Shown: positions 9,061-50,207, counted from the first letter of the stretch. The stretch is DNA of 64,000 nt from Dimorphilus gyrociliatus (GCA_904063045.1 CAJFCJ010000005.1:2406002-2470001); one strand, 5' to 3'. Numbers and translations are program-made. Notes: generated by a model from the letters alone, not told the origin.

Positions 9061-9099
9061 TAATACAAGATTTAATAATTAAAAATATTATAGTAAAAT

Positions 9100-19610: not shown

Positions 19611-20009
19611 ATGGATTGTCCATTTTGCTTTCGTACTATTACGACTAAACAAACTTCTTCATTTGGTTTTAGATTAGGAGATTACATCTGTTCAAAATGT
19701 ATAAAGGAGAAAAAATTGAATAAAAAGTATTCAATTGAGAATAATACTCACAAGTTTTCTTTCAAAACTCGTCGTATAACACCAAATAAAGAAGATGTTG
19801 TTAATGTTAAACACAATTCAAAGTTAGAATTGAATTTTAACAGTGAAAATCAATGTTCAGACATTCAATTAGAAGAGACAAAAAACGGCGAAGAAGAGTT
19901 TAATAGAATAATTAAATCTTGTCAAGAAATAAATAATTTACAACGCGAAATAAATGAAAAGAGAGAGGATTTGTTAAACGATATCGAAAGGTTAGAAAGA
20001 AGGCCGTAG
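19611..20009 (+). pseudogene. Truncated family derivative: half-RING + short coiled coil (member 7)
   Basis: MDCPFC...ICSKC retains only two CxxC pairs (no LPC..H, no CPxC), then a coiled coil, then a stop at 132 aa. Confidence 0.5.
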
Positions 20010-25310: not shown

Positions 25311-25705
25311 ATGTTGAATTCTGAAACAGAAGAAGTAGCAAAATTAATCGACTCAGAAAATGTGGAAACAGGTGAAGTCGTCTTTATCAGACAAAAAAAA
25401 GTAAAATCATACTGGGTATGTAAACAAGAGAAAACTAGACTATTTATTCAAGTTCAATACATTTTAAATAATCAAATTTACAGCCCTTTGCAGTCTTTAC
25501 AATACTTTGCTGTAATCCCCTGTGTGGCCTTGTTGCATTTCAAAAAAGTATTATTTCAAAAGCTTACCAAATAAATGGAAATATGGAAAAAGCCGCAGAG
25601 TATTCAAAATGTTCTTTTATTTGCAGTTGTCTTGGTCTTGTGGTGGGAATTATAACTTTACTTGCGTGTCTCGTGTTATGTTTGTTTATCATGCAAATAC
25701 TGTAA
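25311..25705 (+). CDS. CD225/dispanin (IFITM/PRRT-like) protein 1, 2 exons
   Basis: Exons 25311-25415 and 25484-25705 give ...KSYW|PFAVFTILCCNPLCGLVAFQKS...GNMEKAAEYSK...LGLVVGII, the CD225 pattern. Confidence 0.85.
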
Positions 25706-26641
25706 GGTTATCTCACCGTATATAAATTTTAAAAGAAGATAAAACGTGCAATTAAAAATTTTTAACACTTGCTATTTGTTTACTTAATACAACGAACAAA
25801 ACAATTCTTATCAGCTATGTTATGGGTTAGTATGAATGTGTGTGTGAGAGAAGGAACGAATGTGTAAGGTGCGAGTGTGTGTCATATGGTGAGGGTAGGC
25901 GATTTAGGCTCATATCAATGTATGTCAGCTTGACCTGATATCACAGCCTATGAACGGAATGAGGCGATGTCAAGTGAGACAACACGAACGTGGCTTCACA
26001 GTAATGAGTAGAATCAAATAACCATTTAGAGACATAAACAGGCACAAAGATCTATAAAAAGAACAAAATACAGCAAAATGAGTGAGTGACAAACACTGAA
26101 AGCCAAAATAAAATTGAAACGAAATTGCTAACGTATAAACAAAAAACAACATATTCCTGAGTTCGTGATTAGAGTAGAGAATTTATCTTGTTAATACAAT
26201 ATCTACTGATTGTAAAGTTGTCTTTCTTATTTGTCCTAAGATTCATAAACATCATTGATATTCAAAACAAACTGAATAAAGCTAACAGCGTTAATCGTTT
26301 AAGCTTACAGTATTGTGATTAATCGAATTTATATTTATTAATTTAGGGAACATAACTAAAAGATATAAAGAGTTTGGTTGTTGTAATTACCAATCACTAT
26401 TGGTAGAAAAAACTCTTTTTTTTATGGGAATTCAATACTTGATGAATGGTCATGTCATTCTTTTTTATTAGTATATGCATGTATATTGATAAACATCATG
26501 TAAACAAACTGAAAAAGGATAATCTACAAATGTGCTCCACTTAATTGACAATAGACTTTAAAACGTCTAAATATTAATAGAAATACTACCACTACTAACT
26601 AATATTTTGTTTAAATGATAAGAACTTTTAACACTCTATCT

Positions 26642-26685
<44 letters not shown>

Positions 26686-26893
26686 ATATATCATTAAACC
26701 ACCGTAGATATAGTGCTATGTGACCAGACATCTGTTATTATTTAGTTATAGATTATTCTCATGTTTGGTACGATATTTGCTTTAAAGAGAGAATATTTAA
26801 TAATCCAAAAGCAATCTACTCTACGCTTTCGGACTGTTGAAGAAACTAACTAGAAAAGAATACTTGAAAACTAACATTATTTCAATTTTAAAA

Positions 26894-27340
26894 ATGGAAG
26901 ATAATCATCTCTTAAATAAAAAAACAGAGAAATGCGAAGATAACGCGTGTGAAATTGAAATAGAACCATCCAAATCGGCTGATGGGTTTTGGGTATGTTT
27001 GTTCATTTTCCTGTTTTTATTTACTTTATTAACTCTTTTTTTTATCAATTTTCTCACTTAGAAACTATCAATCTTTACATATATGTTTTGCCTTTTGGGT
27101 AACCTTTGCGGTTTGGTAGGGTTGGTTAAAAGTATTTTCTCAAGAATTCATTTAGCAAATGGAAATTTGAAAAAAGCGCGAGAAACTACAAAATCATCAT
27201 TAAAATGGAATATATTTGGTATAGTTATTGGAACAATAACAATTGGACTGCTTGTTACCATAACTACATTTCAAACTTTTGAAACATTGAAAATATTAAA
27301 GAAAATTTTCAACAATTGCAAACAAGAAGTTTACAAATGA
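26894..27340 (+). CDS. CD225/dispanin (IFITM/PRRT-like) protein 2, 2 exons
   Basis: Exons 26894-26992 and 27062-27340 give ...DGFW|KLSIFTYMFCLLGNLCGLVGLVKS...GNLKKARETTK...IFGIVIG; same phase-0 intron after Trp as copy 1. Confidence 0.82.
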
Positions 27341-27845
27341 GGCTTATGTTATAAATGTGAAGGTGTAACAAACAAACAAAACAAACAAAACAAACAAACT
27401 AACAAATAAATATTTTATATTGTTTCCATGTCTGTTATAAATTATACACAGTATATTTTTATTATTGTCTTTTGTAAACGAGATTTAATTGCCATTCAAC
27501 GATTATGTCATAACAAACTGTCTTTTTTCAAAGTGTAGATGAATTTATTGCAACATCTTGTGAAAGAAAAATCTATAATAGTAGAATATGAATCATACTA
27601 TCATGTATACAAATAACAATATTCATAATAAAATAAGAAAACAAATATTTTCTATACAACTATCTTAGTATAATAGACAAGTAATATTGTAATAATACTT
27701 TCCTCTACTAGAGGGTATGATAGTCTCAAATTTAATGGTTATACTTGCAAAAATTTATGCTTATTCTTGTAATATTGCATTTGCTATATCAGCAATCTAT
27801 TTCACCTGTTCGTACTAATATTAAAGTATCCTTCCTTAGACGATC

Positions 27846-29183
27846 ATGGAAGATTTTAAATATGATGGATGTCCTATTTGTTTAATGAATTTAGAAAATA
27901 TGGAATATCGTCGTCTACCTTGCCATTATACTCATATTTTTTGTACTGTCTGTCTTAATAAATTATTGAAAGATAGGTTAAAATGTGATGGTTTTGCTTG
28001 TCCTCTTTGTAAATTCCAAATGAGTTTTCCAGATCGCGGTATCGATAGTTTCAAAAAAATGGATGTTAAAAAGTCAATTAAAGGTAATTTAATTCTAAAT
28101 GTAGAAGCGGAATTAGATCGATTAAAGAAACAAGAAAAGTATGATATGAGTAGACTTGATCGATTTTTTGATAATGTGCTTCTAATAGTACGAAATGAAA
28201 GAAAATTATTGAAAGGTGAATATACTGAAATTGTCGAAAAAAGGCGTTCCCAGTTGGGAAATATCTTGAATGATTTATCATCACTTCCTAATAACGATGA
28301 GAAAAAACTAAAAGAAACAATTGAACATTTAGACGAGATATCTCAGCAGAATGTTACAATTGATTTGGATACATCAAGATGCGAAGGTTGGAGAATTCTC
28401 TATTCCGAATATGAAAAACCCGATAGTTCTTACCAGAAGAAAGTTGACCATCTTCAACATTTTTTTGGAGCTAAGAACTTCTTCTACGCTCTAACCCAAA
28501 AAGGAATAATAGAATTTAACAAAGATAGCCATAATACAAGTTATATTGATATCAACTTTAATTGTTTTGAACTATCTACTGATAAAGAAATGTTTGGCCT
28601 ATCGAAACTTCCAAGAAATGATTATTCTGTGTTTAAATTTCATGGAATTAGTAAAGTGTTTATGAAATTATTAACAAAGAAAACATGGAAAATCTCTAAT
28701 CCATATCATACTTTATGTTATATTCTAGGATTTGACCTTATTCTCTTTGATACTATAACAAATGAGATTATTTTTAAAAAGGATTTCTTTTCATCAAATA
28801 TTTATAGTTATAGGGAAAAAAAAGATGGAATGTTTTATTTGCTAAGATCGGATCTTGACCTCTCTTTTTGTAAGATAGTCGATATGTTAAAAATATCTTG
28901 TTTTCGAGGAGAAAAAGTCGCAGTAACAATAATAGATAAAAAAATCTCATTAAGAAATGATATAATCAAAGAGATGGTTAACGGAAAACTATTTCTGAGA
29001 AATAAAGATTACGTTTTCCTATTAAACTCCGAAAATCAAACAGCCAAGGCCTACCCGCACAAAAATATTTTCAAGGATGGTTCAATATGGCATTACGTTC
29101 AAACTGAAAGTCAAATCTCGTTTAGTATTCTAAAGAATTTCGAATCATTTTCAGAAATTTCGGTGAAATGTTATAATTTGTAA
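27846..29183 (+). CDS. RING-HC + coiled coil + beta-propeller-like protein, B-box-less TRIM-like (member 8)
   Basis: CPIC-x11-LPCHYTHIFCTVC...CPLC...FPDRGIDSF; coiled coil; SLRNDIIKEMVNGKLF..KDYVFLL...KNIFKDG. Confidence 0.8.
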   Translation: MEDFKYDGCPICLMNLENMEYRRLPCHYTHIFCTVCLNKLLKDRLKCDGFACPLCKFQMSFPDRGIDSFKKMDVKKSIKGNLILNVEAELDRLKKQEKYDMSRLDRFFDNVLLIVRNERKLLKGEYTEIVEKRRSQLGNILNDLSSLPNNDEKKLKETIEHLDEISQQNVTIDLDTSRCEGWRILYSEYEKPDSSYQKKVDHLQHFFGAKNFFYALTQKGIIEFNKDSHNTSYIDINFNCFELSTDKEMFGLSKLPRNDYSVFKFHGISKVFMKLLTKKTWKISNPYHTLCYILGFDLILFDTITNEIIFKKDFFSSNIYSYREKKDGMFYLLRSDLDLSFCKIVDMLKISCFRGEKVAVTIIDKKISLRNDIIKEMVNGKLFLRNKDYVFLLNSENQTAKAYPHKNIFKDGSIWHYVQTESQISFSILKNFESFSEISVKCYNL

Positions 29184-29658
29184 TAATGACGTCATTAGAG
29201 TAAGAAATTTTTAATAAAAGTTCAGTTTTAATGAATAAACAATAGATTTTTTTTATCAATCTATTTGTCCTATATATCTTCATTTTTAAAACAGTCAATG
29301 TCTCTGTGAAAGGAACATACATAGCATACTTTATTTATATGAGATTACTAGGGAATTACATCAGATCATTGACTACAAAACGTTTACAAGCAATCATAAA
29401 TACCTAGACAAGTGAGTAGTATCATAAAAAGATAGTCGAATGGTTAAAGAGCAGTATATGAATATGCAATATGCTGTCTGTATATAACCAAGAAGCCTTA
29501 GAAGTAAAGATATAACTCCCTGCGGTAAAAACGAGAAAAAATTGGAATACAATCTCTACCAATTCAAATTGTTGTCGTTGATAGTAAAACAACTATAAAG
29601 CTTCGACGCTGTTCAATGCAAAGCCAATTTGGAGAGAGCGTCAACCTAAGTAACAAAC

Positions 29659-32600
29659 ATGGCAACTAATCCACTTCTTAAACATCACGAAAAGATTATT
29701 GTTCAACTTTTGCAGAACGACGACTCATTTCTCCTAACGTTGAGATCCTGTCACTTTCTAGTCGAGAATGAAGTAAATGATATGAAAGAGGATTTTAAAT
29801 CTCATTTGGATAAGATTCTTACTTTAACAATAGGCGAATTTTTCAAAGCTTTAAGTTCAACTAATAAGGAGACATGGCGCCGATTGCGAAAAACAATTGC
29901 ACAAACTTGGCAACACATTGTCAAAAAAACTAAAGAAAATGTCTATAATGAATTTTCAATTATAAGAAAATTTTCATTTTCCACAGAAACAAGATATTTA
30001 ATTAATTTTCAAGAGATTTCAATGCCAATTAGAATTAAACCGTTGAGAACTTTAAATGCAGATCTATCGAGAGAGCTCTGCTCTAATAATATCAAATTTC
30101 TTAAATGTATTAACAATGATGATAGGATTTTAATTACAGGAAGTCCGGGAATTGGTAAAACGAGTCACTTTATAAGTATCCTTAATTCATGGGCTAAGGA
30201 TAAAGAATTAATTGATTTTTTAATCCTCAAGATAAAGCTAACTGATTTCAAAATGGAACCAAATTTAGTTGAATTCTTATATGAGAAGAATATAAAAAAT
30301 TCGTCCTACGTCACTCTTAATCTCTTTAAATATTATTTATCAAAAGAATGTGAGGATCAAGATAGAAGAATTGTTCTTCTAGTCGATGCAGAAGACGAAT
30401 TATACAGTCGAATAGAAATGTTTATATTAAAAATTAAAGAATGCAATATATGCAATTTTCCCATTATCGTCTGGTCGAGAAAATGTTACGAAGGTTTATT
30501 TGATAGTAGCTTTGAGATTCTTGGTTATAGCGATGAGAATATTGTTGAATTCTTCAAGAAATTCTTCCTAGAAGATACTCCTTGTCTTGACGAAGATAAG
30601 AAACATTTAAAACTGTTGAAATTTTTAAAAGATAATGGAGAGGATTTACTAAAATCGTGTTTTAATCCATTAATTGCAACTATAGTTGCATATATTTGGC
30701 AGAAGAAGCATAATACTATAATGGATAATAAATTTCAAATTTACGAAGAAGCTGCTCATATCCTACTAAATATGAATACGAAGACAAAAGAGTCAATTTA
30801 CTTGAATGAAAAGATGAATACATGCGCTGAAAAAGCTTTTCTTAATATTTTCTTTAATAAAGATATTAATATGGCTGGGCATAAATTGACAAATTTTGGA
30901 AATTTACTTATATCTCCAGTTCATCAACAAGAAGATAGAGATGGAGAACAATTTCATTTTCTCAATGATACGTTTAAAGAATATTTCGCAGCTAAATTTA
31001 TTGTTAAATCGTTACAAAATAATCTATTAAGCCTAGTTTCGGAGGTAACAAATGAAAAGAATGATACTAAATTGATACAGGTTATCTGTAATCCCGATAA
31101 AGTTGGTAATCGAAGAGCGATATTCGATTTCATAAAGAATATGAACGAAAATATATTTTCGATATTAGTAAAACATAATATCGATATTCTTACCATTTCT
31201 GAAACGGTTACAACCGATATAATCAATCTTTTTAGTCGTGAAAAGCAGACTGAAAGAGTGAAATTAATTGGTGGATCATTAACAAAACTTCTATGGTCAA
31301 TTATTATTAATAGCTACTCAACTGAGATAACTAGTATCACTCTTATCGATGTAGAAATTAATTTTCAAGAATTTATACATAGTTGTAGTGAAAATTTGAA
31401 GGAAACATTACAAAGTTTAACTGTTCATTCCAATATTCAAATTACTGTATCCGGAATATTTTTATGTAAAATAATAAGAAGTTTACGTAAACTAACTAAA
31501 TTACATTTTTCAAATATTACATTTATGAAATTGAAGAGACGAGACTATTCTATTAATTCAATTACTCTAGAAGATCTTCAACTAAAGAATTGTTTCTCTT
31601 CAGGCGATATGCCCTATTTCCATCATTGCCAATTTTTAATACACCTTGATATTTCCCATAATGAATTGAAAGGTAAGAATATAAAATTGAACTTTATTGA
31701 TAATAGATTAGATATACAACTAATTTTTATTATTATTATTATTAAAAGACAACGATTGGGAATTATTATTTAGGTTTTTAGAAAGTTGCGAAGAGTTGAA
31801 ATCTCTGGATTTATCTTATTGCTGTCTTCCTTCAAAACTACATTCACAATTGAAAGAATCCATATCCACTCATAAGTATTTAGAATATATTAATCTATCT
31901 GGTAATTTATTGAATGAAGATGATAATAATGAATTTTTAAATGCATTCAAAAGTAGGAAATTAAAAACAATAGCATTGAATAATTGTAAACTAAATCTTC
32001 ATTCGAACGTCGTTAAAGAAGTCCTTTTAACGAATACAAATTTAAGTGTTTTAGAATTGTCTGGAAATAATTTGATAGAAGTTGAAGAACTCTTATTCTT
32101 GAATGCAATTCTTGAAATTAAAAAATTAAAAAAAGTCAAACTACCATCATTACCTTTGGATAATTTACAGTTTAATCCTAAGAAATGTCAAGTAGAAAAG
32201 AGTCACTCAAAACTGGAATTATTGGATTTTAGTGAAAATAATTTACAAGATAAGATACTTTATTCAATATTTAAGAATATATTATCATTTCAACATCAAC
32301 TTCATACGTTAATGATTGATCATTGCAACATTACATCTAGTAATATTGAAGAGATATCAAAATGCTTTAGCTATCTGAAAAATATCAGTAACTTTAGCGC
32401 CAGAGGCAATCATCTTGCAGATTGCAACATATCTGTACTTTTACAATTTAAATTGGCAAATGATAGAGAAAGTAATATAGATTTGAATCTTTCATCTTGT
32501 AACTTAAATCAAGCATCATTAGAATCAATTTCAAGGTTAAAGTATTCAAAATTAGATTTATCTTTTAACGATTTTCATGAATTCCTCTCCTGGAAGGAAT

Positions 32601-35600
32601 TCTCATTAATATCATTCACTTATTTAAAAGTGTTAAAATTGAAAAAATGTAATCTTGAATCGAATTTCTTAGAAAGATTTATGGATAGTTTTGAAGAAGG
32701 ATCAACAATAGAATATATTGATATATCAAAAAATTCATTAACAAATGGAATTATGTTAAAATTTTTCCAGAATAAGAAAGTCATAAATAGTCGTTTAAAG
32801 ACTATAATCATTTACGGTGGTAATTTAAATGGAAAGATATTTCTTGATTTAATTATTCAAGTTGATAAACTTTCAAAGTTAAATGTATTTAACTCTCCTA
32901 ATACTTATAGAAAGAAGAAATATCCACTCGATCAGATAGATGTTGATGAGTTAATTAACTTGAAAATATTTAACAAAACAATCATTAAATACTTTCTAAA
33001 TGAATTTAAAGAAGTTGTAAATTATAAAAGACTTCGTTTAAAGTTTTGTTCAACCATTCAACATCTTAAAATACTGAGTAGTAGTAGAATAGAAATAAAG
33101 CATTTTGATTTGGATGATTCCCTAACGGAAGAAGCTTATGAATATTTATTACAAATTATAAGGAATCAATATAACATTGAGACAATTTCATTTAAACAAA
33201 CATTTAATCAAATACATAGCGAGAATATTGTGAAATTACTTGTAATTTTCTCTAATAATATTCAATATTTTCACTCAGAAAAGATGCTTCAAGTCTCACT
33301 TTTGATGGAATATTTACCAAAGTTTAAAAATTTAAAATATCTTAAAGTTAATGGCATGAATCTATCAAATCAGAATAAAGTGTTTCTTCAACATTTCAAT
33401 AGGAATATTAGAAATTTAAAAGTATTACATTTAGAAAAGTTATTTATCAATTCCGAATGTTCACTCCTCTTGGGCAATTCGTTAAAACAGCAAACACATC
33501 TAACGGAATTAAGTCTCTCTAATTCTAATCTAGAGAATCTTCTTGGCAAAAATATCTTTCAAATTGAAGATGTTCGATGTTGTTCTATAATAAAGCTTGA
33601 TCTATCTCATTGTAGATTTTGCCCTAGAATGTCAAGGAATCTTGGAATTTTTATAGGATTACAAAGAGGTCTAATTCTTCTAAATTTATCATTTACAAAT
33701 TTAATGGGAAGAATTGGAGAAATTTTATTCTCGAATATATCAAGCTCTTGTAATTTTCTTGAAGAATTTGATCTATCATATTGCGATGTAAGTCTGTGCG
33801 GAATTGAACATGTAGGAAGATTTATTGGAAATCAAAAAAGATTGGAAATATTAAAACTGGTAAGGTTTAATTTAGCTGGAAATTTTGGAGAGACTTTTTT
33901 TGGTAGTATTAATGAATCTACATGCCATATTACACAATTAACGCTTGATTGGTGTACTCTAAGTTCAGAAAGCGCAAAAAGTTTAGGGAAATTCATTAGT
34001 TATCATAATAATCTATTCCAATTAAGTTTAAAAGGTATAGAATTGCAAACAGAAATTATAGAAAATCTTTTTGAAAGTATGTCAACACATTACTGCTCCA
34101 TACGTCAATTAGAGTTGGTTGAAGCGCAATTCAACGAAAAGTCGGCATGTTTTCTACGAAACTATATTGAAAAAAATCAAACTGAAATGAAAGCTCTCAA
34201 CTTTAGAGGTATAGATCTAAGACATTCTATTGGTTTAGAAATGTTTAACGTTAGCGTCTGTTCATTATCAATTCTCTGTCAATTGGATATTATTTCCTGT
34301 AAATTGTCTGAGGATATGTCATTATGTCTTGGAAAATTTATTAGTAATCAATTGAAGTTGAAAATTCTAAATATTCAATCATCTTCCTTAGATGGAAAGA
34401 TTGGAGAAAACCTTTTCAAAACCCTATCGGATTCTTGCTATTCTTTAGAAAAATTCAGTCTATTTAACACGAATCTAAGCGAACAAGCAGTATCCCTTTT
34501 AGGAATGACCATCTCCAATCAAACTCAATTAAAATCTCTATGCCTTCGACAAACAAACTTTGCAGGCAGAATAGGAAAAAGCCTACTTCTTTGTAATAGT
34601 TATGTTAGGTCAACAGTACAACAATTTAAACTTTCTCTAACCGAATTCAGTGCAATCATAGACACTGAACTGGGAGAATCTGCTAGCGATCAGTCAAATT
34701 TCAAGGAAATAGTTTGTAAAGATATTAACTTCGATGAAGATATAAAAGAGAACATTCTGCAAAAGTTGAATACCACTTGTGTTTCAGTTGAAATAATTAA
34801 TATTTCATCTACAGAAATGAATGTTAATACTTCGGAAATACTTATTATATTCATCTGCAATCAAATGAACTTACAGAATCTTACTCTTTGCAATATTATT
34901 ATAAAGAATAATGGTATTATTGAAGATAAATTATCAGAAGATATTAATTTTCCTTCCTCTTTACATGAAGTTCAATTCCAAAAGTGTGATTTGTGCATTG
35001 TAAAAAGTAAAATTATGGGAAGATTTCTCAGTTTTCAAATGCATCTATTAAAAATCAATTTTAGTAATATGAAATTAGAAGGAAATGTAGGAGAGAATAT
35101 CTTTAAAGGACTCTCGAATAATTGTTCATCGATTGAAGACCTAAACTTGACCAATGTTCAATTATGTCAGCGGTCAGCTTCTTATCTTGGAAATTTAATA
35201 AATAGACAAACTAATTTAAAAATACTATGCTTAAAAAATATAAATTTAGAGGGATTAATAGGAGTGAATCTCTTCAAGAATAGCAATCAAAGTACCTCTC
35301 TTAAAAAGTTATGTATGTCATACTGCAAATTCGATTCTGAAATGACACGCCATCTTCAAAAATTTATTGCCAATCAACGCAAATTAATAAGTATCGACTT
35401 AAGAAATACAAAATTAACAGACGAAAGAGGAGCAGGAGAGATATTTCATAATATTAGCGCAACATGCTCTTTAATAGAAATACTCTTAAATGGAATCTGC
35501 CTTGGTGAAATGGCTGCCAATAAACTAGGCCTATTTATAAGTTATCAGACAAATTTAAAGATATTGGAGTTAGATAAGGTAAAATTTGAAGGAATTGTTG

Positions 35601-37375
35601 GAGAAAATCTGTTTTCTAATCTATTAAATACAAGTAATTTCATAAGAAAACTTGATTTCCGTAATATAAACTTTACGACTACTTTGGCAAGTCATCTCGG
35701 AAAATTTATTAATAATCAAAAGTTTTTAAAAACACTTATTCTTAAAGGAAACAATTTAAAAGGGGAAATTGGAGAGAATCTTTTCAAGAGTATGTCATCT
35801 TCATGCTGCTCTCTTGAAATTATAGATATAAGCGGTTGTAAATTAAGTGAGAAAACGTCATCCTATCTTGGTAAATTTCTTAGTTATCAAACTAATTTGA
35901 TAGGTTTAAATAGAGAAAAAATTGAATTTGAAGGAAGAAGCGAAGAATTTCTGTTTGGAGAGATGAAAAGTCTTTGTTCTTTGATAAAAAAACTAGATTT
36001 TAGAAATGGAAATTATAGAGAAAATGCCGCAATAATTATATTAAAATTCGTTTTTAATCAGAGTCACTTGGAATTTCTATATATAGAAAACACGATATTA
36101 GAAGCATCAGATGGTATTGGACGGTTTGAGACACTACCTTTGCATCTCACTGAAATACGTCTTAAAGGCAGTGTTATAAGCGAATATCTAGCATCATATA
36201 TTGGAAAATTAATAGGCAATCAAATGAAAATGAAGGAATTAAATCTTTCCAAAGCAAAATTGGAGGGAAGAGTAGGAGAAAATCTCTTCAAAAATATTTC
36301 CAATTGTTGTTGTTTCTTAAAGGAATTGGACTTATCCTATACGAAAATCAGCTCCCAAGCGGCATATTATCTTCGATTATTTATTGAGAAACAAACTGTT
36401 CTAGAATCGCTTGATCTGAGTCATATGAATTTAGGAATGGAGATAGGAAGTACTCTATTTAATAATCTTCATGAACATTTATCATTTCTTCGCAAGCTCT
36501 CTCTTCAGAAGAGCATTTTAGACGAGAATATGGTAAGATATCTAGGAGAGTTTATCGGTAATCAAATAAATTTATACATGATCAACTTTGGAGAAGTTGA
36601 TTTTTGTGGAAATTTGGGAGAAATTCTATTTAGTAACATATCGTCTTCTTGCTCTTCCGTAGAAATACTTGATCTATCCAATGCAAAGTTGGATAGTACA
36701 GCTGCAAAGTATCTAGGAATATTTATACGAAATCAGTATGGATTAAAAACTCTCTCCTTTGAAAATACAGATTTAAGTGCTTCAATTGGAGAGAATCTAT
36801 TTTGGAGTTTAGAGAGTTCATGCTCTTCTCTGTCTGCCTTTAATTTTCAAAATAGTAATATATGTCATGCAACTGCCCCTTGTATTGGAAAATTCTTAAG
36901 CCTTCAAAAGAAATTAAGGGTATTAAACTTTGATAATGCATTCTCAGCAGAAATTGTTGGAGAGCGTATTTTTAAAACTATTACGGAAGATTGTTGTTGG
37001 ATAGAATATTTAAATTTAAATCACATTTGCCTAAATGAACAGTCGGCATACAATCTTGGGAAAATTATAAGTAATCAACGTCATCTATTGATGATTAGTT
37101 TAAAGGAAATAAATTTAAATGGATCTATTGGAGGTAGTTTGTTCAAAGGGATGTTTGGCGCTTCAGTAGAAGCGATTAGTTTGTCAGATATAGCAATTGA
37201 TTTTTATGCAGTAGAAAAATTAGGAGAATTCTTAAAAAGCCAAAGAATTATGCAAAGTATTATTTTTGATTTTAAATTGGATTCGGAGTCTAAGAACCAT
37301 CTTCTAGACGTTATAAGTAACCTACAATACAATTTAGAATCGTTTGGTCTAGATCCCAATTTCAATAAAGAATAA
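29659..37375 (+). CDS. Giant NLR: death-fold-like N-terminus, NACHT, very long RI-type LRR (about 2546 aa, 2 exons)
   Basis: Walker A ITGSPGIGKT, Walker B LLVDAEDE, CFNPL, WHD FLNDTFKEYFAA. Intron 31673-31748 (AAAG|gtaag...aaag|AC) joins the two ORFs in frame. Alternating 28/29-aa LRRs. Confidence 0.9.
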
Positions 37376-37730
37376 AATGTTTTTTTTCCTTCAAGAACTT
37401 AACCATATCTCTTATATTATAGAATTTAATTGGCCTATTTTTTCAAAACCTTTATATACTGTATTATATATACTTTTAGAAAGCGAAAGTAGACATAGAT
37501 AGTTTGGAATGAAGAAGTAGAATAGAAAACTGTTTTATTTCAATTGATATCGCTTTTTATGTTATTCTTTACACATTTGAAAATATATAAAAATATTTAT
37601 TTTACCCGATTTTAATCGATTACTGTTTAGTATTTTGTTTAGTATTGAACAAATGGGTGGGGGTAGTGATTCATAAGAGTTTAGTTGAATTTGAATTTAG
37701 CAGCAGTGTATTTCATTTATTCTTAATAAA

Positions 37731-39074
37731 ATGGAATGTTGTATTTGTTTCAAACCAACTAAAACTAAGGATATACGACAATTACCTTGTCATAGTTCTC
37801 GTATAATTTGTATTCAATGTTTACGGAAATACGCAACTAATAAGACTAATTTTAATTGTCCTCGTTGTGGTGATAAAATTTTATGCCCTAAACTTGGTCT
37901 AGACGAATTTAAAGTAAAAAACATCTTTGGAATATTACAAGAAAACCTAAGAGAAGAGATCAGTATATCTGGTCAAGAGTTAAAATTTAGTGAGCGTAGT
38001 GCAAATGATACATTCGGACAAACAATCGGTAATCTTAAAAAGGAAATAGCAGAAGAACAGAATAACTTAAAACAGAATATTGAAGAGTATCTTAGCGAAA
38101 AAACTAACAACTTGGATGTATTGTTAAAGATATTGAATAATAATATTGAAAGTGAGGAGGCCGATGAAGAAACTCTATCCAGGCAAGAAGAAGACCTTAA
38201 TAATATACAAGATGTTTTAGAGAGTCTTAGTAACGAGTATTTAAAGTTTGATTCAAATATTAACGACTTTAATAATTTGTGCCTTGCTCTCTACGGATAT
38301 GAGAAACCGATTAATCAATACGAGAAATTCATCAAAGATATAAAATTAACATTTGCTCATTATCCTTATTTTTATATCTTTTGCTCGAATAGACGTTATC
38401 ATATATTAGATAAAGATAATATGACAACTCATCATTGTATCAATTTCATTGATATTGCTGAAGATGATAGAAACAATTTCTACTTTCTAGTTAGAGAGAA
38501 TGATTATAAAATCTTTAAAATGAAAAAGACTTCAAACAGTTTTAAAGATGTTAATGTAACTCATGGAGATGTTCAACGACGTCACAGTAAAACGTTACTA
38601 TTTTTGGATAAAAGGAATTTTATAGTATTCGATCCATCGGCAAAAGTCTTTAATATATTTGAAAATCTCCTGCAAAATTCAAAAGTATATAAGAAATTCA
38701 AGATAAAAGAATTCATTTATTTTATTCTTGAAGAAGAGATTATGTACTGTAGAATGGATGATATTACAACTCATTCAAACTGGAAAACGCAACAACAAAC
38801 TATATTTAAAAAGTGTTCAATTCAAATAACTAAGAAAGAAGAGATCTTTCAAAGGGAGAATATTTTAAAAGAAATAAAAACTGGTAAAATCTTTACAAAA
38901 AGTAGTAAATATATCTTCCTTTTAGACTGTGAAACGAAGAATGCAACTAGGATTCCATCGTCGAATTTAAAATATATTGAAGATGCCGATAACTATATGA
39001 CTTGTAAAGATGAAATACAATTTCTATTTTATAATGCTAGCGGTATAGCTAGATCAATAACGTACGACTTTTAG
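37731..39074 (+). CDS. RING + coiled coil + beta-propeller-like protein (member 9), RING His replaced by Arg
   Basis: CCIC...LPCHSSRIICIQC...CPRC...CPKLGLDEF; DIAEDDRNNFYFL; RENILKEIKTGKIF..SKYIFLL. Confidence 0.78.
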   Translation: MECCICFKPTKTKDIRQLPCHSSRIICIQCLRKYATNKTNFNCPRCGDKILCPKLGLDEFKVKNIFGILQENLREEISISGQELKFSERSANDTFGQTIGNLKKEIAEEQNNLKQNIEEYLSEKTNNLDVLLKILNNNIESEEADEETLSRQEEDLNNIQDVLESLSNEYLKFDSNINDFNNLCLALYGYEKPINQYEKFIKDIKLTFAHYPYFYIFCSNRRYHILDKDNMTTHHCINFIDIAEDDRNNFYFLVRENDYKIFKMKKTSNSFKDVNVTHGDVQRRHSKTLLFLDKRNFIVFDPSAKVFNIFENLLQNSKVYKKFKIKEFIYFILEEEIMYCRMDDITTHSNWKTQQQTIFKKCSIQITKKEEIFQRENILKEIKTGKIFTKSSKYIFLLDCETKNATRIPSSNLKYIEDADNYMTCKDEIQFLFYNASGIARSITYDF

Positions 39075-39089
39075 AAAATATCTGTTTAT

Positions 39090-40478
39090 TTAGGTCATTC
39101 TATATTCTTTTAATTTTTGTTCATTTCTCAATACATTTATTAAATAGAAACTAAATCCATCCTCTGATTGATGATATTCCGTAACTATATAAGTTTGAAA
39201 GAGACTTTTCTGTTTATAAGCTTTAGCAGTTTTCTCAATAGAGTTTATAGTAAATACGAAATCTCTTGTAGACATAAACAAACATCCGTTTACAATATCA
39301 TCAAAGATACTTTTCAATGATGCTGATGTATCATTTACAAACTCAATTGTTATTGGAATACCAGAATAAGTTGCATTTTTGTTAATTTCGTTTATACTAC
39401 TGTAACTTAGGTCAATAGTTTCGTCGTCATCACTACAATTAGTGTATCTATATACGTATAGAGTATTTTTCCAATGTCTTGTAATAAAGGACGAATCAAT
39501 AGGCAAAAAATAGTTCCGTCTCCAGCAAATTTCTCCTCGTTCATTGGTTAAATAGACATCGTTATCTATATTAAAAAATACAATACCATCCATATTGGTT
39601 AGTTCGTTTTTAGCAGGAAGATATAAACGTAGTATTTTATCGACTTTCCAATAAAATAGATAGTATGCTGTAACATCTATTGTTATTTTAATTGCAATTA
39701 ACTCATGAAATTCTCTTGAATTATCAACTCCATCAACTACAAAATTTTCTTGTCTCTCAAAAGACAGAGCTTTTCTAAATTTTCCACATAATTTCCTATT
39801 TTCGGTTTTCATCCCATTCATTAATGAATATCCAAGTTTATCAAAATATAATTTCCTAAACGAATAGGAATCGAACCAACAGACTCTTTCAAAGTTTATT
39901 GACGTTTTTGGAACGAGTGATATATGCAATTTAAACTCTCTCAGTCTTTCAAGGCCTATTATATGAAAATTATTTTTACAGATTTTTATACACTCCATCC
40001 TAAGATCTGACAGTTTCTTTAAATTTTGAGCTACTGCTAAATCTCCACTTTCGGATTCTATTAAGTTGATTCTCTTAAGAATATCCTCTAATTCGCCTTT
40101 TTTCTTTAAACATTTTACCTCCAATGAATTCAAGATTGTATTCTTCTTTTCTGAACATAATTTTTCAAACTCTTTTAGATCTTTTATAGCGCATTCAGCC
40201 CTTCTTCGATCTTCCTGTTTTAAGTCTTTAACCTTCTGTATAAGCAATTTCTTCTTTGCTTCGGACGCCTTCGGAGAAGAGTATTTTTCAAATCCTTTAA
40301 TTCCATTTCTAGGTATCTTTAATATTCTTTTACAAAGAGGGCAATCAAATTCCTTATTAATTAGACCTCTTTTCGGTAGCTTTTCCAGACACGAATCACA
40401 AAAAATATGCGATTCATGACAGGGCAAAAGCCTGCAATCCGACTTTGATAGTGTACCAAAACAAACAGGGCAAGACAT
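39090..40478 (-). CDS. RING-HC + coiled coil + beta-propeller-like protein (member 10)
   Basis: CPVC...LPCHESHIFCDSC...CPLC...IPRNGIKGF; SIFDDIVNGCLFMSTRDFVFTI...KSLFQ. Confidence 0.8.
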   Translation of the reverse strand: MSCPVCFGTLSKSDCRLLPCHESHIFCDSCLEKLPKRGLINKEFDCPLCKRILKIPRNGIKGFEKYSSPKASEAKKKLLIQKVKDLKQEDRRRAECAIKDLKEFEKLCSEKKNTILNSLEVKCLKKKGELEDILKRINLIESESGDLAVAQNLKKLSDLRMECIKICKNNFHIIGLERLREFKLHISLVPKTSINFERVCWFDSYSFRKLYFDKLGYSLMNGMKTENRKLCGKFRKALSFERQENFVVDGVDNSREFHELIAIKITIDVTAYYLFYWKVDKILRLYLPAKNELTNMDGIVFFNIDNDVYLTNERGEICWRRNYFLPIDSSFITRHWKNTLYVYRYTNCSDDDETIDLSYSSINEINKNATYSGIPITIEFVNDTSASLKSIFDDIVNGCLFMSTRDFVFTINSIEKTAKAYKQKSLFQTYIVTEYHQSEDGFSFYLINVLRNEQKLKEYRMT

Positions 40479-41215
40479 TGTACATTCGAAATGGTGTTAG
40501 TAATTAAAAGAAATAAAAAGAATATCCTATATTCTATCTAATAGCCAAGTCATGAACGTTTCGTGTAGAAAGACAGTATTATTAAATAACGTTCTATTCA
40601 TAACTAAAATGAGAAGGACCTATATGGAATAATTTACCTTTTCTATTGTATAAATTACTAAATATTGAAAACGGTATTTTTGAATGTAAGGTTCTGGGAG
40701 CTGAAAACGGAAATTACAATATATATATATATATATAAACATATATATATATATATATGTTTACTAATATTAACATATACACCTAAATCATATAGAAAGA
40801 CGATCAATGAACATAATATATCGATTTCATTCAAATACGGAGGGAATTGACTCATTCAAAAGAGGCCTGTAAATAACAATAGCTAACATATTCCTGAATT
40901 TTTATTTCTTGATATTTCCTGTCGGTATTAACATACCACAAGATATTATTTATAAGCTTAAAAGAAACGTTACAGAGCTTGCTTTAAAAGGTAAATTAAT
41001 TTAAAAAAGAGAATACAAACAGCAACGTCATCATCAAAATTTGTAACACAAAACTAAATATAAATCTTATATCATCCAACTCTATTTTTATACGTAAGAC
41101 TCTTTTTCTCTATTACTCATTTTAACCTTTTGGCCTACGTGCTTAGTTTATTTATAAAGACATCTTCACAAAGAAAAGAGTAATATTTCTATTTGGATTA
41201 GCATTATTGTCGATT

Positions 41216-42568
41216 ATGAGGTGTTTAATTTGTTTGATTGATGTAAAAAAAGAAGAGGATATCCGTTGTCTTCCTTGCAATGATTGCCATTTTTTTTGTT
41301 TAGTTTGCCTTAAAAAGACTGTTAAAAATGAAATATATTTAAAATTTGATGATCGGATTAAATGTCCTATTTGTCAAGAAGAAATTTTATGGCCTCTAGG
41401 TGGTCTGGATGATTTAAAACTAGAAAATGTATTCAAATCTTTGAAAGAGGATTTATATACAAAATTAATATCGAAACGAGAGGAACTTCAAATAGAAGAG
41501 GAGAAGATTCTTGAAGATTTGGAGAACAGAGTAGCAAAGTTAAAAGCGAATGTTCTACACAAGCTGCAAACGTTAATTGAAAGGAAACAGATGATTCTGA
41601 ATCAAAAACTCAAAGAGTACTCTACAATGATTAATAAGCTTGAACATCAATATTCACAAAATTCAACATTATCCAATCAGATTGAAGAGGAGAAAGTTAT
41701 AAATGATGTAATACTCTTTCTAGAAAAGTCAAGCAATCTAACAATGGACAAAAAAGATATTGTATCAAAACTGAATGACTGGAATTTCTATTTATTTAAC
41801 CATATTCAACCTGAATCTTCATTTGAACAGCAATTAGAAAAGTTTAATTTTACATTTTTTGTCAATTCCAATTGGCTTTTGTTTACAAAAAGTTATTTTT
41901 ACGAGTGTAGTACCAATTTTCAATTAAGAAGAATAACACTAAATGACGAATCTTTCGAAATTGTTGATGTAGAGATGTTTAATAATACTATCTATATTCT
42001 ATTGAAAAGATTTTTGGTCTATAGGATTATGAAAATGGAAAAAAATTCAAATATTCAAGTCTGTTCATTAAAACAAAAATTATTTTTAGAAAATCAACAA
42101 CCGTTTTTAGTGTTTCGCGAAAATTATAATTTATTCATTTATCAAATTGAAGAAGGTTCTTTAGTAGTTAAAAAGAATTTTATGCCTTATTTACAAACAA
42201 AAAGCAAAAAGTTTGTAAATGGAACATTGTATTTTTCAACCGAATACAAAGAAGTATATTATTGTAATGATAATGACATACTTAATGAAGAATTTATGCC
42301 GGTAAAGGAGGCTACAAGATTACCAATCCAAAAGAGAATATCGTTAAAGGAAGATATAATAGAAGAAATATTAAATGATAAAATATTATTATTAAATGAT
42401 TCGTACGTTTTTCTTGTTGATTCAATAAGAAAAGAAGTTAAATTGATAGCTCAAAAGCATCTTTTCAAAGAAGGAATAATTGTAAATATAACTGTTAAAA
42501 GGAATTTTGCATCATTTCTATTAAAAAATTCAAAATGTAAGCTTTTTATTAAAAATTACAAATTTTAA
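41216..42568 (+). CDS. RING-HC + coiled coil + beta-propeller-like protein (member 11)
   Basis: ATG 41216; CLIC...LPCNDCHFFCLVC...CPIC...WPLGGLDDL; SLKEDIIEEILNDKILL..SYVFLV...KHLFKEG. Confidence 0.8.
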   Translation: MRCLICLIDVKKEEDIRCLPCNDCHFFCLVCLKKTVKNEIYLKFDDRIKCPICQEEILWPLGGLDDLKLENVFKSLKEDLYTKLISKREELQIEEEKILEDLENRVAKLKANVLHKLQTLIERKQMILNQKLKEYSTMINKLEHQYSQNSTLSNQIEEEKVINDVILFLEKSSNLTMDKKDIVSKLNDWNFYLFNHIQPESSFEQQLEKFNFTFFVNSNWLLFTKSYFYECSTNFQLRRITLNDESFEIVDVEMFNNTIYILLKRFLVYRIMKMEKNSNIQVCSLKQKLFLENQQPFLVFRENYNLFIYQIEEGSLVVKKNFMPYLQTKSKKFVNGTLYFSTEYKEVYYCNDNDILNEEFMPVKEATRLPIQKRISLKEDIIEEILNDKILLLNDSYVFLVDSIRKEVKLIAQKHLFKEGIIVNITVKRNFASFLLKNSKCKLFIKNYKF

Positions 42569-42734
42569 GCATAATTTATTAATACAAATAAATAACAAAA
42601 ATAACAAAACTAATAGATTAAAGACCATCAAATATTGCGCAATTTTTAATTTTCAAAAAAACCATATATATAGATAGGTTAGACAAACAATCAATAGCAA
42701 ACATTTTTGTAATAAAAGTCTACTTGATGAGTTA

Positions 42735-43337
42735 TCATTGTGATAAGTCATTTTGAGAAATTTGTAGACGGATTTTAGGCATATCCAAATTAAATGGTAA
42801 TTGAATTGTTTCGTTCGATTTCATATTCAAAAAATTTAGTAACTTTCTTCTTATTTTAAATAAGTTCTTTAGTTTTCTTTCTCCTGTTTCATCGCCAAAT
42901 TTCAAGTCGAGATTGTCAATTTCATCTTTAATGCTAAAGATTTTTAAATTTCTCTTAAAATAAATATTTCTAATTTCTTCTTTTATCAATTCCTTCTTTT
43001 TATCCATATTGCTGATCAACTCTTCTATTTGAACTTTAAGTATTTTGTCCTCTTTAATACACTTATCTGTTAATTCATTTCTCATTTTAATTAAGGCATT
43101 ATTCAAGCTATGAACCAGCGTAGGTTCCCATTCGACTATTGGCAAAGCTTCGATTCCTCTTCTTCCCAAACAAATAATAGCTTTACACAAAGGACAGCTG
43201 AACTGATTTTTAATCGTTGACTTTGTAAATTTAGCAATTTCTCTGAGACATTTTGAACAAAATATATGTGTTGTATGGCAGGGTAGACGTCTACCAACTA
43301 AATTCTGTAAACTGGTTAAACAAACCGGGCATTCCAT
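42735..43337 (-). CDS. RING-HC + coiled coil only, propeller absent (member 12)
   Basis: ATG 43337: MECPVC...LPCHTTHIFCSKC...CPLC...LGRRGIEAL; stop after the coiled coil (200 aa). Confidence 0.65.
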   Translation of the reverse strand: MECPVCLTSLQNLVGRRLPCHTTHIFCSKCLREIAKFTKSTIKNQFSCPLCKAIICLGRRGIEALPIVEWEPTLVHSLNNALIKMRNELTDKCIKEDKILKVQIEELISNMDKKKELIKEEIRNIYFKRNLKIFSIKDEIDNLDLKFGDETGERKLKNLFKIRRKLLNFLNMKSNETIQLPFNLDMPKIRLQISQNDLSQ

Positions 43338-47324: not shown

Positions 47325-50207
47325 TTTAACAAACTTTTCCGGCTGTCCAATAGGAACTTTTGAATGTAGATATGGAAGATTTTGCATTAGTTCCAATTAC
47401 GTTTGTGATGGTTATTCGGATTGTTTATATTGGGAGGATGAAGTTAATTGTACATCAATTTATCATTTCAAGTGTACATCGGGTGAATTAATTAATGTAA
47501 GATTAGTATGCGATATTATAGGTGACTGTAAGGATGGGAGTGACGAAGCAAACTGTTGTAAGTTATATGTTTGTTAAATTCTCGTAATTAGCCTATTAAT
47601 TCAAGAAATATAATAAAACCAGCCTTTCTATGTCAGTCGACAAAGTAAGATTAACGCAAGTTATTAAGGACTCATTTAATAAAGTTTATAATTTATCAGA
47701 TGCGATAATGGACAATGTATATATCCGGAAGATTTATGCGATAATCAGAGACATTGCGTTGATAGCAGTGATGAAAACTGTAGTCCTCGTATGTATAGAA
47801 CTTGTTAATACTATTCACTACTATTAAATGAAATCAAATCAAAACTAAGCCTGTACCGAAAAGAAATTTCAATGCGGTAATAGATGTGTACCTATAATTA
47901 ATCAATGCGATATGAAAACGGATTGTGAAGATATTCTCTCCTCTCATAAATCTTTGTCGTGCTTTAAAGAATTCAACTCAAAGATGAATAGAACAAGATC
48001 ATTTTGGCATATATCTTTAAAAGATACTCTTTGTCATCTAATTTACGATTCTATGGAAAATATGCTAATTGAAATTCATTTTCCTTTCTACAATTTGCAA
48101 TTTTGTCGTACAAGTAAAAAGTGTCAACAAGGAGAATATAAATGTCAAAAAGTGAACTATTGTATATCAATCAATCAAGTATGCGACGGTTTAAGTCATT
48201 GTCTATATCTAGATGATGAAATTGATTGCCGTAAGTTTCATCACCTTGAGAAGATTTTATACTGGTTCATATGAAAAAAAGGTCACTATTTGCTGTTTAA
48301 GAGGATATTGTAAGAAATGAAAAGAAAGCATTGATTACCTAAACCATAAGCAAAACTTATCCTCCCTAACTGCAAATCGACTGGCCATTTTTAAGTGAAC
48401 TAGGGTCAAATTACATAACATTTTAATTTTAATTTTTAATGTTTAGATCATTTTGCACCAAAAGGATATTTTAAATGTCGTTTACAAAATCGTTATCTAA
48501 ACTTTTATCAAGTCTGCAATAGAAAACTGGAATGTCTACACGGCAATGACGAATACTATTGTATGTTAAATAAAAATTGCCCTAGAAACTGTACATGCAA
48601 TCAATCTTTTGGAATGATTTGTAATCAATCATCAATAGTCGATTTAATATATGAATCCGCTAGAACAGTTCAACTAATATTACCAAATGATAGTATTTAT
48701 CATTATCTACAAAATTCCGCCTATATCGTCTATTTAAACATTTCGTTTGGACGAATAACGCATTTTCTGATTAGAAATTATCCAAATCTAGCTATATTAG
48801 ACCTACAAAATAATTTAATTAATAAATTAAATAATTCATTAAATATCATTTTATATAAACTGCAATATTTGGATTTAAAAGACAATAGAATACAAGAAAT
48901 TGAAGATTACTTTTTTAAAATTACTCCTAACTTATTACATCTTGATTTATCTAATTCAAATATTCGATTTATAACTAGTAATAAATTAAAAGGACTTGAA
49001 AAGTTAACCATGTTAATAATAGTTAAAAGTAACTTGTACAACATTGAAAAAGAATCTTTTAAATACTTTCTAAACTTGAAAGTATTGTTTATGAATAAAA
49101 CTCATCTTCCGGAAGATTATTTCAGTGATTTTATATATTTTCTACCGAAATTACAATATCTTAAAAGTGAATATTATCAATTTTGTTGTTTGGTTAAAAG
49201 ATTTAGTTTTAATCTTCAAAAATGTCAACCAAAAGAGACAGTACTAAAATCTTGTAAACATCTTATAGGATCATTATTTCTAAGGATTATAACTTGGATT
49301 ATAATTGTATTTTGCCTAATTGGGAATATTTTTAGTTTAGTAGCCAAAATAAAATGTTTTAAATCAATAATATACATCTGGCATATTGGATTGAATGTTT
49401 CGGATATAATTTCAGCCATTTATTTGACAATTATTGGTATTATTGATCAATACTACTTTGGGAAATATATCCAAAATGATATGGCATGGCGGAATAGTAT
49501 TTTATGTAAAACTATTGGAGTTTTTAACAATTTTGCAATCTTATCATCAACTCTATTCATTCTGGTAATTACCATTGATAGATATATTGCTTTTAAGAGT
49601 CCTTTTAAAAAACATTATATTGAGAAGACTACTGCAATAGCTGTACTTATGGGGATAATCGTATTAGGCTTTATCCTTTCAACTATTCCCTTTCTTTTTA
49701 ATAAAGTTTGATATAAGAAATTCCATTTTGCCATTTCTTCTATGAGTCTTAATATCTATTTTATAGAAATACTATTCAATATCTACAGTTTGTTTTACAC
49801 TGCATCTAACCCGAAAGAAACATAGAGGATGGCAATATTCTTTTATCGTCTTTAGTTGTTTTATGATGTTGATACGTATATCTATAATCTTTCTATATAC
49901 TTCTATTGTGAAAATAGTACTTGGCTCTAAAAAGCTAATAAGTCAATACCACTATAAGAAACGTAAACGCAAAATGTTATCATTTAGTTTATTAATCGTT
50001 ATAACTAATACGTTATGCTGGTTCCCAATTTCACTTTTGAATCTAATGGCTACTTTTAATATATCCAATATTTCTGAAAAGATACACGTATGGATAATTA
50101 TCATTCTTTTACCTTTAAATTCATCGTTAAATCCTTATATTTATTCGATTGGTGAAATCTTACTCCTACTAAAACGGCGAAAGATTAAATCTGAAGTTGA
50201 ACAGTAA
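47325..50207 (+). CDS. GRL101-like LGR: at least 6 LDLa repeats + LRR + 7TM GPCR (5' end uncertain)
   Basis: LDLa repeats such as CPIGTFECRYGRFCISSNYVCDGYSDC..WEDEVNC; LRRs LxxLDLxxNxI; TIDRYIAF, CWFP, LPLNSSLNPYIY. Intron before 49767 keeps the frame. Confidence 0.88.

Follow-up and report, generated by a model that had tools for sequence, protein, structure and literature searches.

A large NACHT-LRR gene and two CD225 genes within a RING/coiled-coil/beta-propeller gene array of Dimorphilus gyrociliatus

The neighborhood of a giant NACHT-LRR (NLR) gene in the annelid Dimorphilus gyrociliatus is rather likely to be one stretch of a large, old, apparently dinophilid-restricted array of RING/coiled-coil/beta-propeller genes, in which the NLR and a pair of CD225 genes are embedded. 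Within the window, as we call the whole 64,000-nucleotide stretch of DNA analyzed, positions 25311-43337 hold on the + strand two CD225 genes, a RING gene, the two-exon NACHT-LRR gene, and a second RING-family gene. An earlier note had regarded these as a co-regulated defense module; its gene set (CD225-1, CD225-2, member 8, the NLR, and member 9) is present at the positions it assigned, and the broad classes it named (CD225, RING, and NACHT-LRR proteins in an invertebrate) are correct. Spiralian innate immunity is poorly known, and the region supplies an unusually large annelid NLR that the public record mis-annotates, a pair of dispanin genes without annotation, and a RING/coiled-coil/propeller family, seen in dinophilids, with a conserved RING-less branch.

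The NACHT-LRR gene and the CD225 pair

The NLR gene is composed of two ORFs in different frames, which the public record splits into two separate genes.

29659-37375, + strand: NLR gene, two ORFs joined by an intron, ~2,546 codons
29659-31672, + strand: exon 1, with a ~145-residue helical N-terminal region, the NACHT domain, and the first LRRs
31673-31748, + strand: intron, 76 nt, phase 1, GT-AG
31749-37375, + strand: exon 2, 1,874 codons, stop-free, with RNase-inhibitor-type LRRs of 57-residue period

The gene's own match to Pfam NACHT lies below the cut-off (E 3.1e-4; 21 bits vs 26.7). The full-length orthologue P0003, which is 36-38% identical to the window NLR, matches the same family at E 9.1e-15 (55 bits), and NACHT is present in 7 of 7 aligned relatives; the Walker A and B residues are invariant in alignment A3. 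Among solved structures, a profile built from the window NLR and P0003 matches the NACHT region of NAIP (E 7.3e-5). Exon 2 matches RNase inhibitor (E 1.4e-9) as well as NLRP14, NLRP9, and NLRP5. By its predicted domain order, a central NACHT followed by C-terminal LRRs, the protein is an NLR as defined by Ting et al. 2008 (as given in PMC3879445), and the "giant NLR" of the earlier note is upheld by the orthologue's NACHT score and the LRR matches of exon 2.

Like bona fide metazoan NLRs, the protein combines a central P-loop NACHT bearing Walker A/B motifs with C-terminal RNase-inhibitor-type LRRs. It differs from NAIP/NLRP and other metazoan NLRs in being very large, with ~60 LRRs across its ~2,546 codons, and from tripartite NLRs in its ~145-residue N-terminal region: no credible Pfam family, whether of the CARD, PYD, Death, BIR, or TIR type or any other, was found in residues 1-150 of either the window NLR or its orthologue. 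A phmmer search with exon 1 alone against solved structures returned only weak RFC P-loop matches, and an AlphaFold2 model of exon 1 (7 sequences; pLDDT 37) was too poor for a fold reading. The protein would be a cytosolic STAND-type sensor that oligomerizes via NACHT once its ~60-repeat LRR region is engaged.

Word-seeded, length-limited protein searches found neither a paralogue nor a second NLR locus. The gene is apparently single-copy and unexpanded, unlike the NLRs of the annelid Capitella teleta, for which 55 have been reported (PMC3879445). A 2,055-aa gene model beside family members at another locus (L013) was considered as a second giant LRR/NLR; it does not resemble the window NLR, and its only match is a weak one to an F-box-type LRR.

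Two CD225 genes, both uncalled in the public record, lie upstream of the NLR.

25311-25705, + strand: CD225-1, exon 1 at 25311-25415, exon 2 at 25484-25705, ~108 codons
25416-25483, + strand: CD225-1 intron, 68 nt, GT-AG, phase 0, after a Trp codon
26894-27340, + strand: CD225-2, exon 1 at 26894-26992, exon 2 at 27062-27340, ~125 codons
26993-27061, + strand: CD225-2 intron, 69 nt, phase 0, after a Trp codon

The two genes agree in intron position and phase, and their products share 41% identity across 61 residues. Exon 2 of each carries the Pfam CD225 domain (CD225-1: E 4.6e-9, 36.7 bits, cut-off 27.1; CD225-2: E 2e-10, 41.1 bits, above the gathering threshold). The ORF at 25311-25574, which had been taken for CD225-1, is exon 1 running into the intron, and the CD225 domain lies in a different frame. 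On the strength of this domain, both genes are predicted to encode generic dispanins. The narrower label "IFITM-like" did not hold, since PRRT1 (E 0.02) gave the sole full-length match among solved structures and no IFITM appeared. According to a dispanin survey, the IFITM (DSPA) subfamily arose near the teleost radiation, and invertebrate dispanins are nearer DSPC and DSPD than DSPA (PMC3282796).

As in other dispanins (IFITM, PRRT1/SynDIG4, PRRT2, TMEM233), a basic loop joins two hydrophobic helices in the predicted proteins, and CD225-1 retains the double-Cys motif of dispanin helix 1. They depart from the family in two respects: the loop reads G-N in place of the motif G-D, and the inter-helix splice site conserved in eukaryotic dispanins is missing, the sole intron preceding helix 1. 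Both would be small two-helix membrane proteins.

The RING/coiled-coil/beta-propeller family

A family HMM identifies 15 family ORFs across the window, 12 of them full-length.

3357-4586, 4805-6067, 6441-7724, 9100-10314, and 13245-14438, − strand: RING-less members
15490-16773, + strand: RING-less member
27846-29183, + strand: member 8, RING, coiled coil, and C-terminal beta-propeller, 445 aa
37731-39074, + strand: member 9, degenerate RING, 447 aa, family HMM 408 bits
39090-40478, − strand: member 10, RING-bearing, 462 aa
41207-42568, + strand: member 11, RING-bearing, ~453 aa
42735-43337, − strand: truncated member, RING and partial coiled coil, propeller absent, 200 aa, called as P0065
51232-52560, − strand: RING-less member, 442 aa
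59256-60626, + strand: RING-bearing member, 456 aa
61327-61890, + strand: fragment, C-terminal propeller part only (family HMM positions 326-457)
63621-64000, + strand: RING-bearing member, clipped at the window end

A RING is present in five full-length and two partial members. It is absent from 7 of the 15, and no RING exon was found anywhere upstream of these seven; the six RING-less members within 3357-16773 score 378-475 bits against the family HMM. Pfam matches to the RING vary among its bearers: member 8 matches zf-RING_2 slightly under the cut-off (E 1.3e-5), member 10 matches zf-RING_5 (E 6.1e-6), and the truncated member, which covers family HMM positions 7-166 only, matches zf-C3HC4 above the cut-off. 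Member 9 has Arg at the fourth zinc-ligand position (alignment A1) and no Pfam RING match. Members 9 and 10 are convergent, with stop codons 15 bp apart. We discounted as chance a weak Vp20_capsid match of member 10 (E 0.009, well short of the cut-off), and a "1,566-aa ORF" with the family domain upstream of the window (L003) is an N run in the assembly and no gene.

Such irregularities invite a reading in terms of pseudogene decay or annotation artefacts: the family copies include one truncated ORF and two fragments, the CD225 genes are uncalled, and the public record divides the NLR into two genes. We regard this as extremely improbable, given long unbroken frames (for example, the 1,874 stop-free codons of NLR exon 2), canonical introns of 68-76 nt, near the genome median of 66, an NLR intron whose position and phase are common to a second dinophilid, and twelve full-length family members.

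An AlphaFold2 model of member 8 (mean pLDDT 78) comprises a RING, a long coiled coil, and a propeller, with helices at residues 74-145, 152-166, and 177-186 (pLDDT ~75-85). Foldseek matched the model to WD40-type and six- to seven-blade propellers with TM-scores of only 0.3-0.48, COP1 complexes being among the top matches. TRIM-NHL, COP1, and TRAF7 arrange their parts in the same order, with a C3HC4 RING at the N-terminus, then a long coiled coil, and finally a beta-propeller. In contrast to all three, the family appears restricted to dinophilids, half of its copies lack the RING, and NHL or WD40 repeats are not recognizable by sequence; it also lacks the B-box of a TRIM. No family member has a B-box, NHL, or WD40 match in Pfam, and a B-box would have no room in the model, where the coiled coil begins ~10 residues past the RING. 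The "TRIM-like" label was dropped for want of a B-box; in addition, 7 of the 15 window ORFs carry no RING.

Searched as a single sequence, member 8 retrieved no protein but itself; relatives came to light only with the family profile. When 1.84 billion proteins were searched with that profile, only 94 cluster representatives were recovered, and all of those whose source was looked up came from D. gyrociliatus or three related Logan samples. The family thus appears confined to dinophilid annelids. It extends well beyond the window, with 13 further ORF matches in the 25 kb immediately upstream (L003), others ~25 kb (L013) and 125 kb (L004) downstream, and more on another contig (L012). The array holds RING-bearing and RING-less subfamilies.

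Identity between orthologues is 48-68% in the RING vs 26-45% in the coiled coil and propeller. Judged by these alignments, the RING is the conserved part and the putative recognition-like domains diverge much faster. RING-bearing members would be E3 ubiquitin ligases that dimerize through the coiled coil, their fast-diverging propeller choosing the targets; RING-less members could act only as partners or decoys.

Gene order and the question of a defense module

The case for a module made in the earlier note drew on orientation and on distances of 355-505 bp between genes. CDS-to-CDS gaps from CD225-2 through member 9 were re-read exactly as 505, 475, and 355 bp, and the three further family copies reported after member 9 are indeed present, although they are not co-oriented (strands −, +, −). 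Across the 18 readable CDS-to-CDS spacers in the window, the median is ~600 bp and the range 15-1515 bp; the three focal gaps take 4th, 6th, and 7th place among them. This spacing is not beyond chance expectation and is ordinary for the array and a compact genome. Same-strand runs of 5-7 genes are likewise usual across the array (window positions 3357-14438; L005, L012, and L013). The genome paper gives 208.9 genes per Mb and a median intron of 66 bp, and reports no operons or trans-splicing in D. gyrociliatus (PMC7854359). In a tandem array lying within a compact, operon-free genome, tight spacing and co-orientation belong to the background and are a weak guide to co-regulation. Other guest genes inside the window encode GPCR, PAN-domain, solute-symporter, and LGR-like proteins.

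If the five co-oriented genes were a true defense module, co-regulated and functionally coupled, the NLR would sense, the flanking RING-propeller ligases would regulate or execute, and the CD225 proteins would act at membranes. Their tight juxtaposition on one strand fits this, as does the age of the parts, since orthologues in a second dinophilid exist for both the NLR and the member 9/10 pair; the genome paper adds that expanded local duplicates in this species are mostly immune-related (PMC7854359). Upstream of the five genes, however, ISRE, kappaB, and STAT-type motifs are not enriched relative to other upstream regions or to the whole window (kappaB and STAT-type motifs are absent, and ISRE is no commoner than background), and no k-mer of at least 9 bases is common to at least four of the five regions. 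The check for IRF/NF-kB/STAT-like elements that the earlier note had suggested therefore gave no shared motif. Spacing and orientation match the array background, and operons are absent according to the genome paper (PMC7854359). Four other family loci (89 kb, 25 family ORFs), searched with clade-specific HMMs, have no NACHT or CD225 gene; the genome census of these classes is indirect, resting on word-seeded, length-limited protein searches and, for the HMMs, on those 89 kb only. Any gene here is flanked by the RING-propeller family, since the family fills the window and continues on both sides, and with an apparently single-copy NLR the arrangement is a single instance. A co-regulated module is, on this evidence, quite unlikely. 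Were the neighborhood nonetheless a working unit, it would offer a compact, tractable set of sensor, ubiquitin-ligase, and membrane-protein genes in a spiralian.

Under the favored reading of genes embedded in an array, each gene most likely forms a transcription unit of its own, and tandem duplication together with compaction of the genome, rather than any common control element, would account for the short spacers and shared orientation. Random placement of three small gene classes would nevertheless be unlikely to bring a NACHT-LRR gene, two CD225 genes, and RING ligase-like genes together within 12 kb, which makes a functional or selective link possible. The neighborhood is real and probably immune-related, an innate-immune role being plausible.

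The immune role of the RING-propeller family itself is suggested by its evolutionary pattern. Taxon-restricted local duplicates that pair a conserved catalytic domain with fast-diverging putative binding domains are frequent among immune recognition families, and the genome paper describes few expanded families, mostly local duplicates implicated in immunity (PMC7854359). The array is in the same species and has the same duplication pattern, and the available text and supplements do not name RING, TRIM, NLR, or IFITM families among the nine reported expansions (PMC7854359). The array might instead serve reproduction, development, or proteostasis, with the NLR and CD225 genes as chance guests. 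The mixed company of GPCR, PAN-domain, solute-symporter, and LGR-like genes, a RING-less state in about half of the family that is conserved in the second dinophilid, and the lack of a sequence match between any member and a known immune family would all suit such an array. Against it stand the duplication and divergence pattern and the genome paper's tie between expanded local duplicates and immunity, made without naming the RING-propeller family in the available text (PMC7854359), and we consider a non-immune array fairly unlikely. A partial parallel exists in zebrafish, where NLR-B30.2 arrays on chromosome 4 are likewise mixed with an expanded multigene family, of multi-zinc-finger genes; there, however, it is the NLRs that have expanded, and an association with fintrims is explicitly denied (PMC4852459), whereas here a single NLR sits inside a RING-propeller array.

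In the second dinophilid, best matches are 1:1, gene pairs are conserved, and the NLR intron has the identical position and phase (L002). The member 9 orthologue is P0025, and the convergent member 9/10 pair is kept as P0025/P0043 on L008. By these positional orthologues and the common intron, the array and the NLR are judged to be old. A bolder proposal is that the NLR and the adjoining RING-propeller genes form a linkage group predating the dinophilid split, a sensor-ligase pair with dispanin membrane effectors. The diversified propellers, with RING-bearing and RING-less partners, would then set or read the state of the NLR, and a single locus would encode an invertebrate equivalent of TRIM-regulated NLR signaling. 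We hold this very doubtful. The NLR contig of the second dinophilid ends before any neighboring gene and shares no overlap or 20-mer with the contig bearing the member 9/10 orthologues. The latter contig begins in a TA repeat.

Gene structures and domain content of the NLR and CD225 genes

The earlier note's pair of CD225 genes and giant NLR proved to be present on the + strand, each as a spliced gene:

25311-25415 and 25484-25705, + strand: CD225-1, exons 1 and 2, with a 68-nt GT-AG intron between
26894-26992 and 27062-27340, + strand: CD225-2, exons 1 and 2, with a 69-nt intron between
29659-37375, + strand: spliced NLR gene, comprising ORFs 29659-31773 and 31796-37375 in different frames

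The two ORFs of the NLR gene (~2,546 codons) are linked by a 76-nt GT-AG intron (31673-31748) in phase 1, which splits an Asp codon. P0003, an NLR homologue from a Logan assembly (locus L002) with 36-38% identity across the entire exon 1, displays a 64-nt phase 1 intron at the same position, likewise within an Asp codon; given this match in place and phase, the intron is common to relatives. Spliced models were searched exon by exon, with the exons as separate queries. Exon 1 alone gave a sub-threshold match to Pfam NACHT (E 3.1e-4), P0003 matched the same family with E 9.1e-15, and a two-sequence profile constructed from both retrieved the NACHT region of NAIP (E 7.3e-5). All remoter relatives are NACHT-LRR proteins, and the residues of Walker A and Walker B do not vary in the alignment. 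Exon 2 contains 1,874 codons with zero stops and a 57-aa repeat period, and resembles RNase inhibitor as well as the LRRs of NLRP14, NLRP9 and NLRP5. The window gene qualifies as a bona fide NLR by the NACHT plus LRR definition (PMC3879445). No known effector domain was matched in residues 1 to ~145. The public record splits the gene in two, with products of 704 aa (exon 1 run into the intron) and 1,098 aa, and leaves the stretch 31796-34078 uncalled. Word-seeded exon-1 protein searches with the single sequence or the profile, covering proteins 0.55-1.75 times the query length, found no other NLR paralogue in D. gyrociliatus.

In both CD225 genes, which coincide with no called gene in the public record (25311-27340), a phase-0 intron follows a Trp codon immediately ahead of the first hydrophobic helix. 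The second exons share 41% identity and pass the Pfam CD225 threshold (E 4.6e-9 for CD225-1 and 2e-10 for CD225-2), and on sequence both genes are classed as dispanins. The narrower label "IFITM-like" did not hold up, as the sole whole-length match to a window CD225 protein among solved structures is PRRT1 (E 0.02), with no IFITM retrieved. According to a survey of dispanins, the IFITM (DSPA) subfamily originated near the teleost radiation, and invertebrate dispanins are closer to DSPC and DSPD (PMC3282796). Unlike the eukaryotic dispanins with a conserved splice site between the helices (PMC3282796), CD225-1 and CD225-2 lack this site. Directly 3′ of the CD225-2 stop codon lies a (ACAAACAA)n-like microsatellite (27370-27400).

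Domain content of the RING, coiled-coil and propeller family

A family profile built from window copies identified 15 ORFs across the whole window (12 full-length, one truncated and two fragments), of which only 7 contain a RING; upstream of the others there is no RING exon. The RING-less branch comprises seven window copies, located within 3357-16773 and 51232-52560. The earlier note had termed these genes TRIM-like, a label that was abandoned: lacking a B-box and any sequence match to NHL or WD40, the family proteins are not TRIMs. Likeness to TRIM-NHL, COP1 and TRAF7 is confined to layout. In the AlphaFold2 prediction for member 8 (27846-29183; mean pLDDT 78), residues 1-60 form a RING, ~74-186 a long coiled coil and 194-445 an all-beta C-terminal domain. 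Foldseek searches with the C-terminal domain retrieved WD40-type and 6-7-blade propellers, among them COP1, Fbw7/Cdc4, DCAF1 and an SMP-30-like lactonase, with TM-scores of only 0.3-0.48. Among 1.84 billion proteins, 94 family representatives (50% identity clusters) were found, and all those traced to a source belong to D. gyrociliatus or to one of the Logan runs SRR23372229, SRR23372231 and SRR23372216. Across this collection the family is very small and taxon-restricted.

In member 9 (37731-39074), Arg replaces the fourth zinc-ligand His of the other RINGs and no Pfam RING match is obtained; this RING may be catalytically dead. A 132-aa ORF at 19611-20009 gave a very weak match to the family RING profile (E 0.0026) and may be a RING remnant or a chance match. 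A sub-threshold Vp20_capsid match in member 10 (E 0.009; 16 bits, with the Pfam cut-off at 27) was taken as chance. Nothing in the region looks like a viral or toxin gene.

Spacing, orientation and extent of the array

CD225-1, CD225-2, member 8, the NLR and member 9 had been proposed as a co-regulated defence module on account of their close spacing and shared orientation. The gene order and CDS-to-CDS gaps were reproduced, with 505 bp between CD225-2 and member 8, 475 bp between member 8 and the NLR, and 355 bp between the NLR and member 9, as were the three further copies that follow:

39090-40478, - strand: family copy (member 10)
41207-42568, + strand: family copy
42735-43337, - strand: truncated family copy of 200 aa

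Both properties match the array background. Among the window's 18 spacers (median ~600 bp), the focal three take ranks 4, 6 and 7, two other family loci (L005 from the second species and L012 from D. gyrociliatus) include spacers of comparable or smaller size, and the array commonly has 5 to 7 successive genes on one strand. A shared upstream motif was not recovered either: ISRE-type motifs are not enriched in the five upstream regions versus 14 others or the whole window, none of the five contains a kappaB-type or STAT-type motif, and no 9- or 10-base k-mer is common to four of the five. Spacing and co-orientation are no longer a basis for the module; co-regulation itself is not disproved. 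The window (GC 26-38%) belongs to assembly GCA_904063045.1, at about 2,406,002-2,470,001 of the 4.55-Mb contig CAJFCJ010000005.1, of D. gyrociliatus, a miniature annelid, in agreement with the invertebrate origin assumed in the earlier note. For this species the genome study gives a density of 208.9 genes per Mb, with short stretches between genes and a 66-bp median for introns, and describes no sign of operons or trans-splicing (PMC7854359).

Beyond the window, 13 further family ORF matches were found in the 25 kb ending ~5 kb upstream (L003), four ~25 kb downstream (L013), two, along with other RING genes, ~125 kb downstream (L004), and six on a separate contig (L012). NACHT and CD225 profiles from the window genes matched none of the ORFs at these four loci (89 kb). 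An apparent 1,566-aa ORF in L003 (16575-21272) was discarded as an assembly gap (N run) followed by an ordinary family member.

Conservation in a second dinophilid and putative role

The Logan organism is a dinophilid related to, yet distinct from, D. gyrociliatus. At a collinear locus (L011/L012), alignable DNA is 72% identical, and positional gene pairs display 30-86% protein identity, so rates vary greatly among neighbouring genes. For most window members the second species has a 1:1 best match, at 32-48% identity, higher than the 21-38% among window paralogues. The adjacent pair 4805-6067/3357-4586 is kept there as P0013/P0014, and that of the convergent members 9 and 10 as P0025/P0043. 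The RING-less branch is conserved as a co-oriented tandem run of seven genes (L005, 2016-13209); its presence in both dinophilids indicates that RING loss is old and tolerated. From these orthologues and conserved pairs, the array, RING-less branch included, and the NLR predate the species split. The second-species contigs bearing the NLR and the member 9/10 orthologues end short and do not overlap. Between orthologues, RINGs are 48-68% identical, and the coiled coil and propeller only 26-45%.

Taxon restriction, local duplication and fast-diverging putative binding domains favour a putative immune role as the likeliest reading. By analogy with the respective families, the NLR would be an ATP-dependent oligomerising sensor, RING-bearing members would be dimeric E3 ligases whose propellers select targets, RING-less members could serve as non-catalytic partners or decoys, and the CD225 proteins would act at membranes.

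The non-family window genes are mixed and include a rhodopsin-type GPCR, a PAN-domain protein, a solute symporter, an LDLa-LRR-7TM receptor and a transposase remnant. The ORFs containing LDL-receptor class A, LRR and rhodopsin-type 7TM domains (47912-50207, + strand) jointly look like a single spliced LGR-like receptor gene. The ORF at 62365-63072 matches the HTH domain of Tc3-type transposases below the cut-off (E 7.5e-5) and probably represents what is left of a Tc1/mariner element within the array. PAN-domain genes adjoin family members both in the window (17901-18968) and ~125 kb downstream (L004, 15699-16565 and 19287-20345), which hints that mixed blocks were duplicated segmentally.
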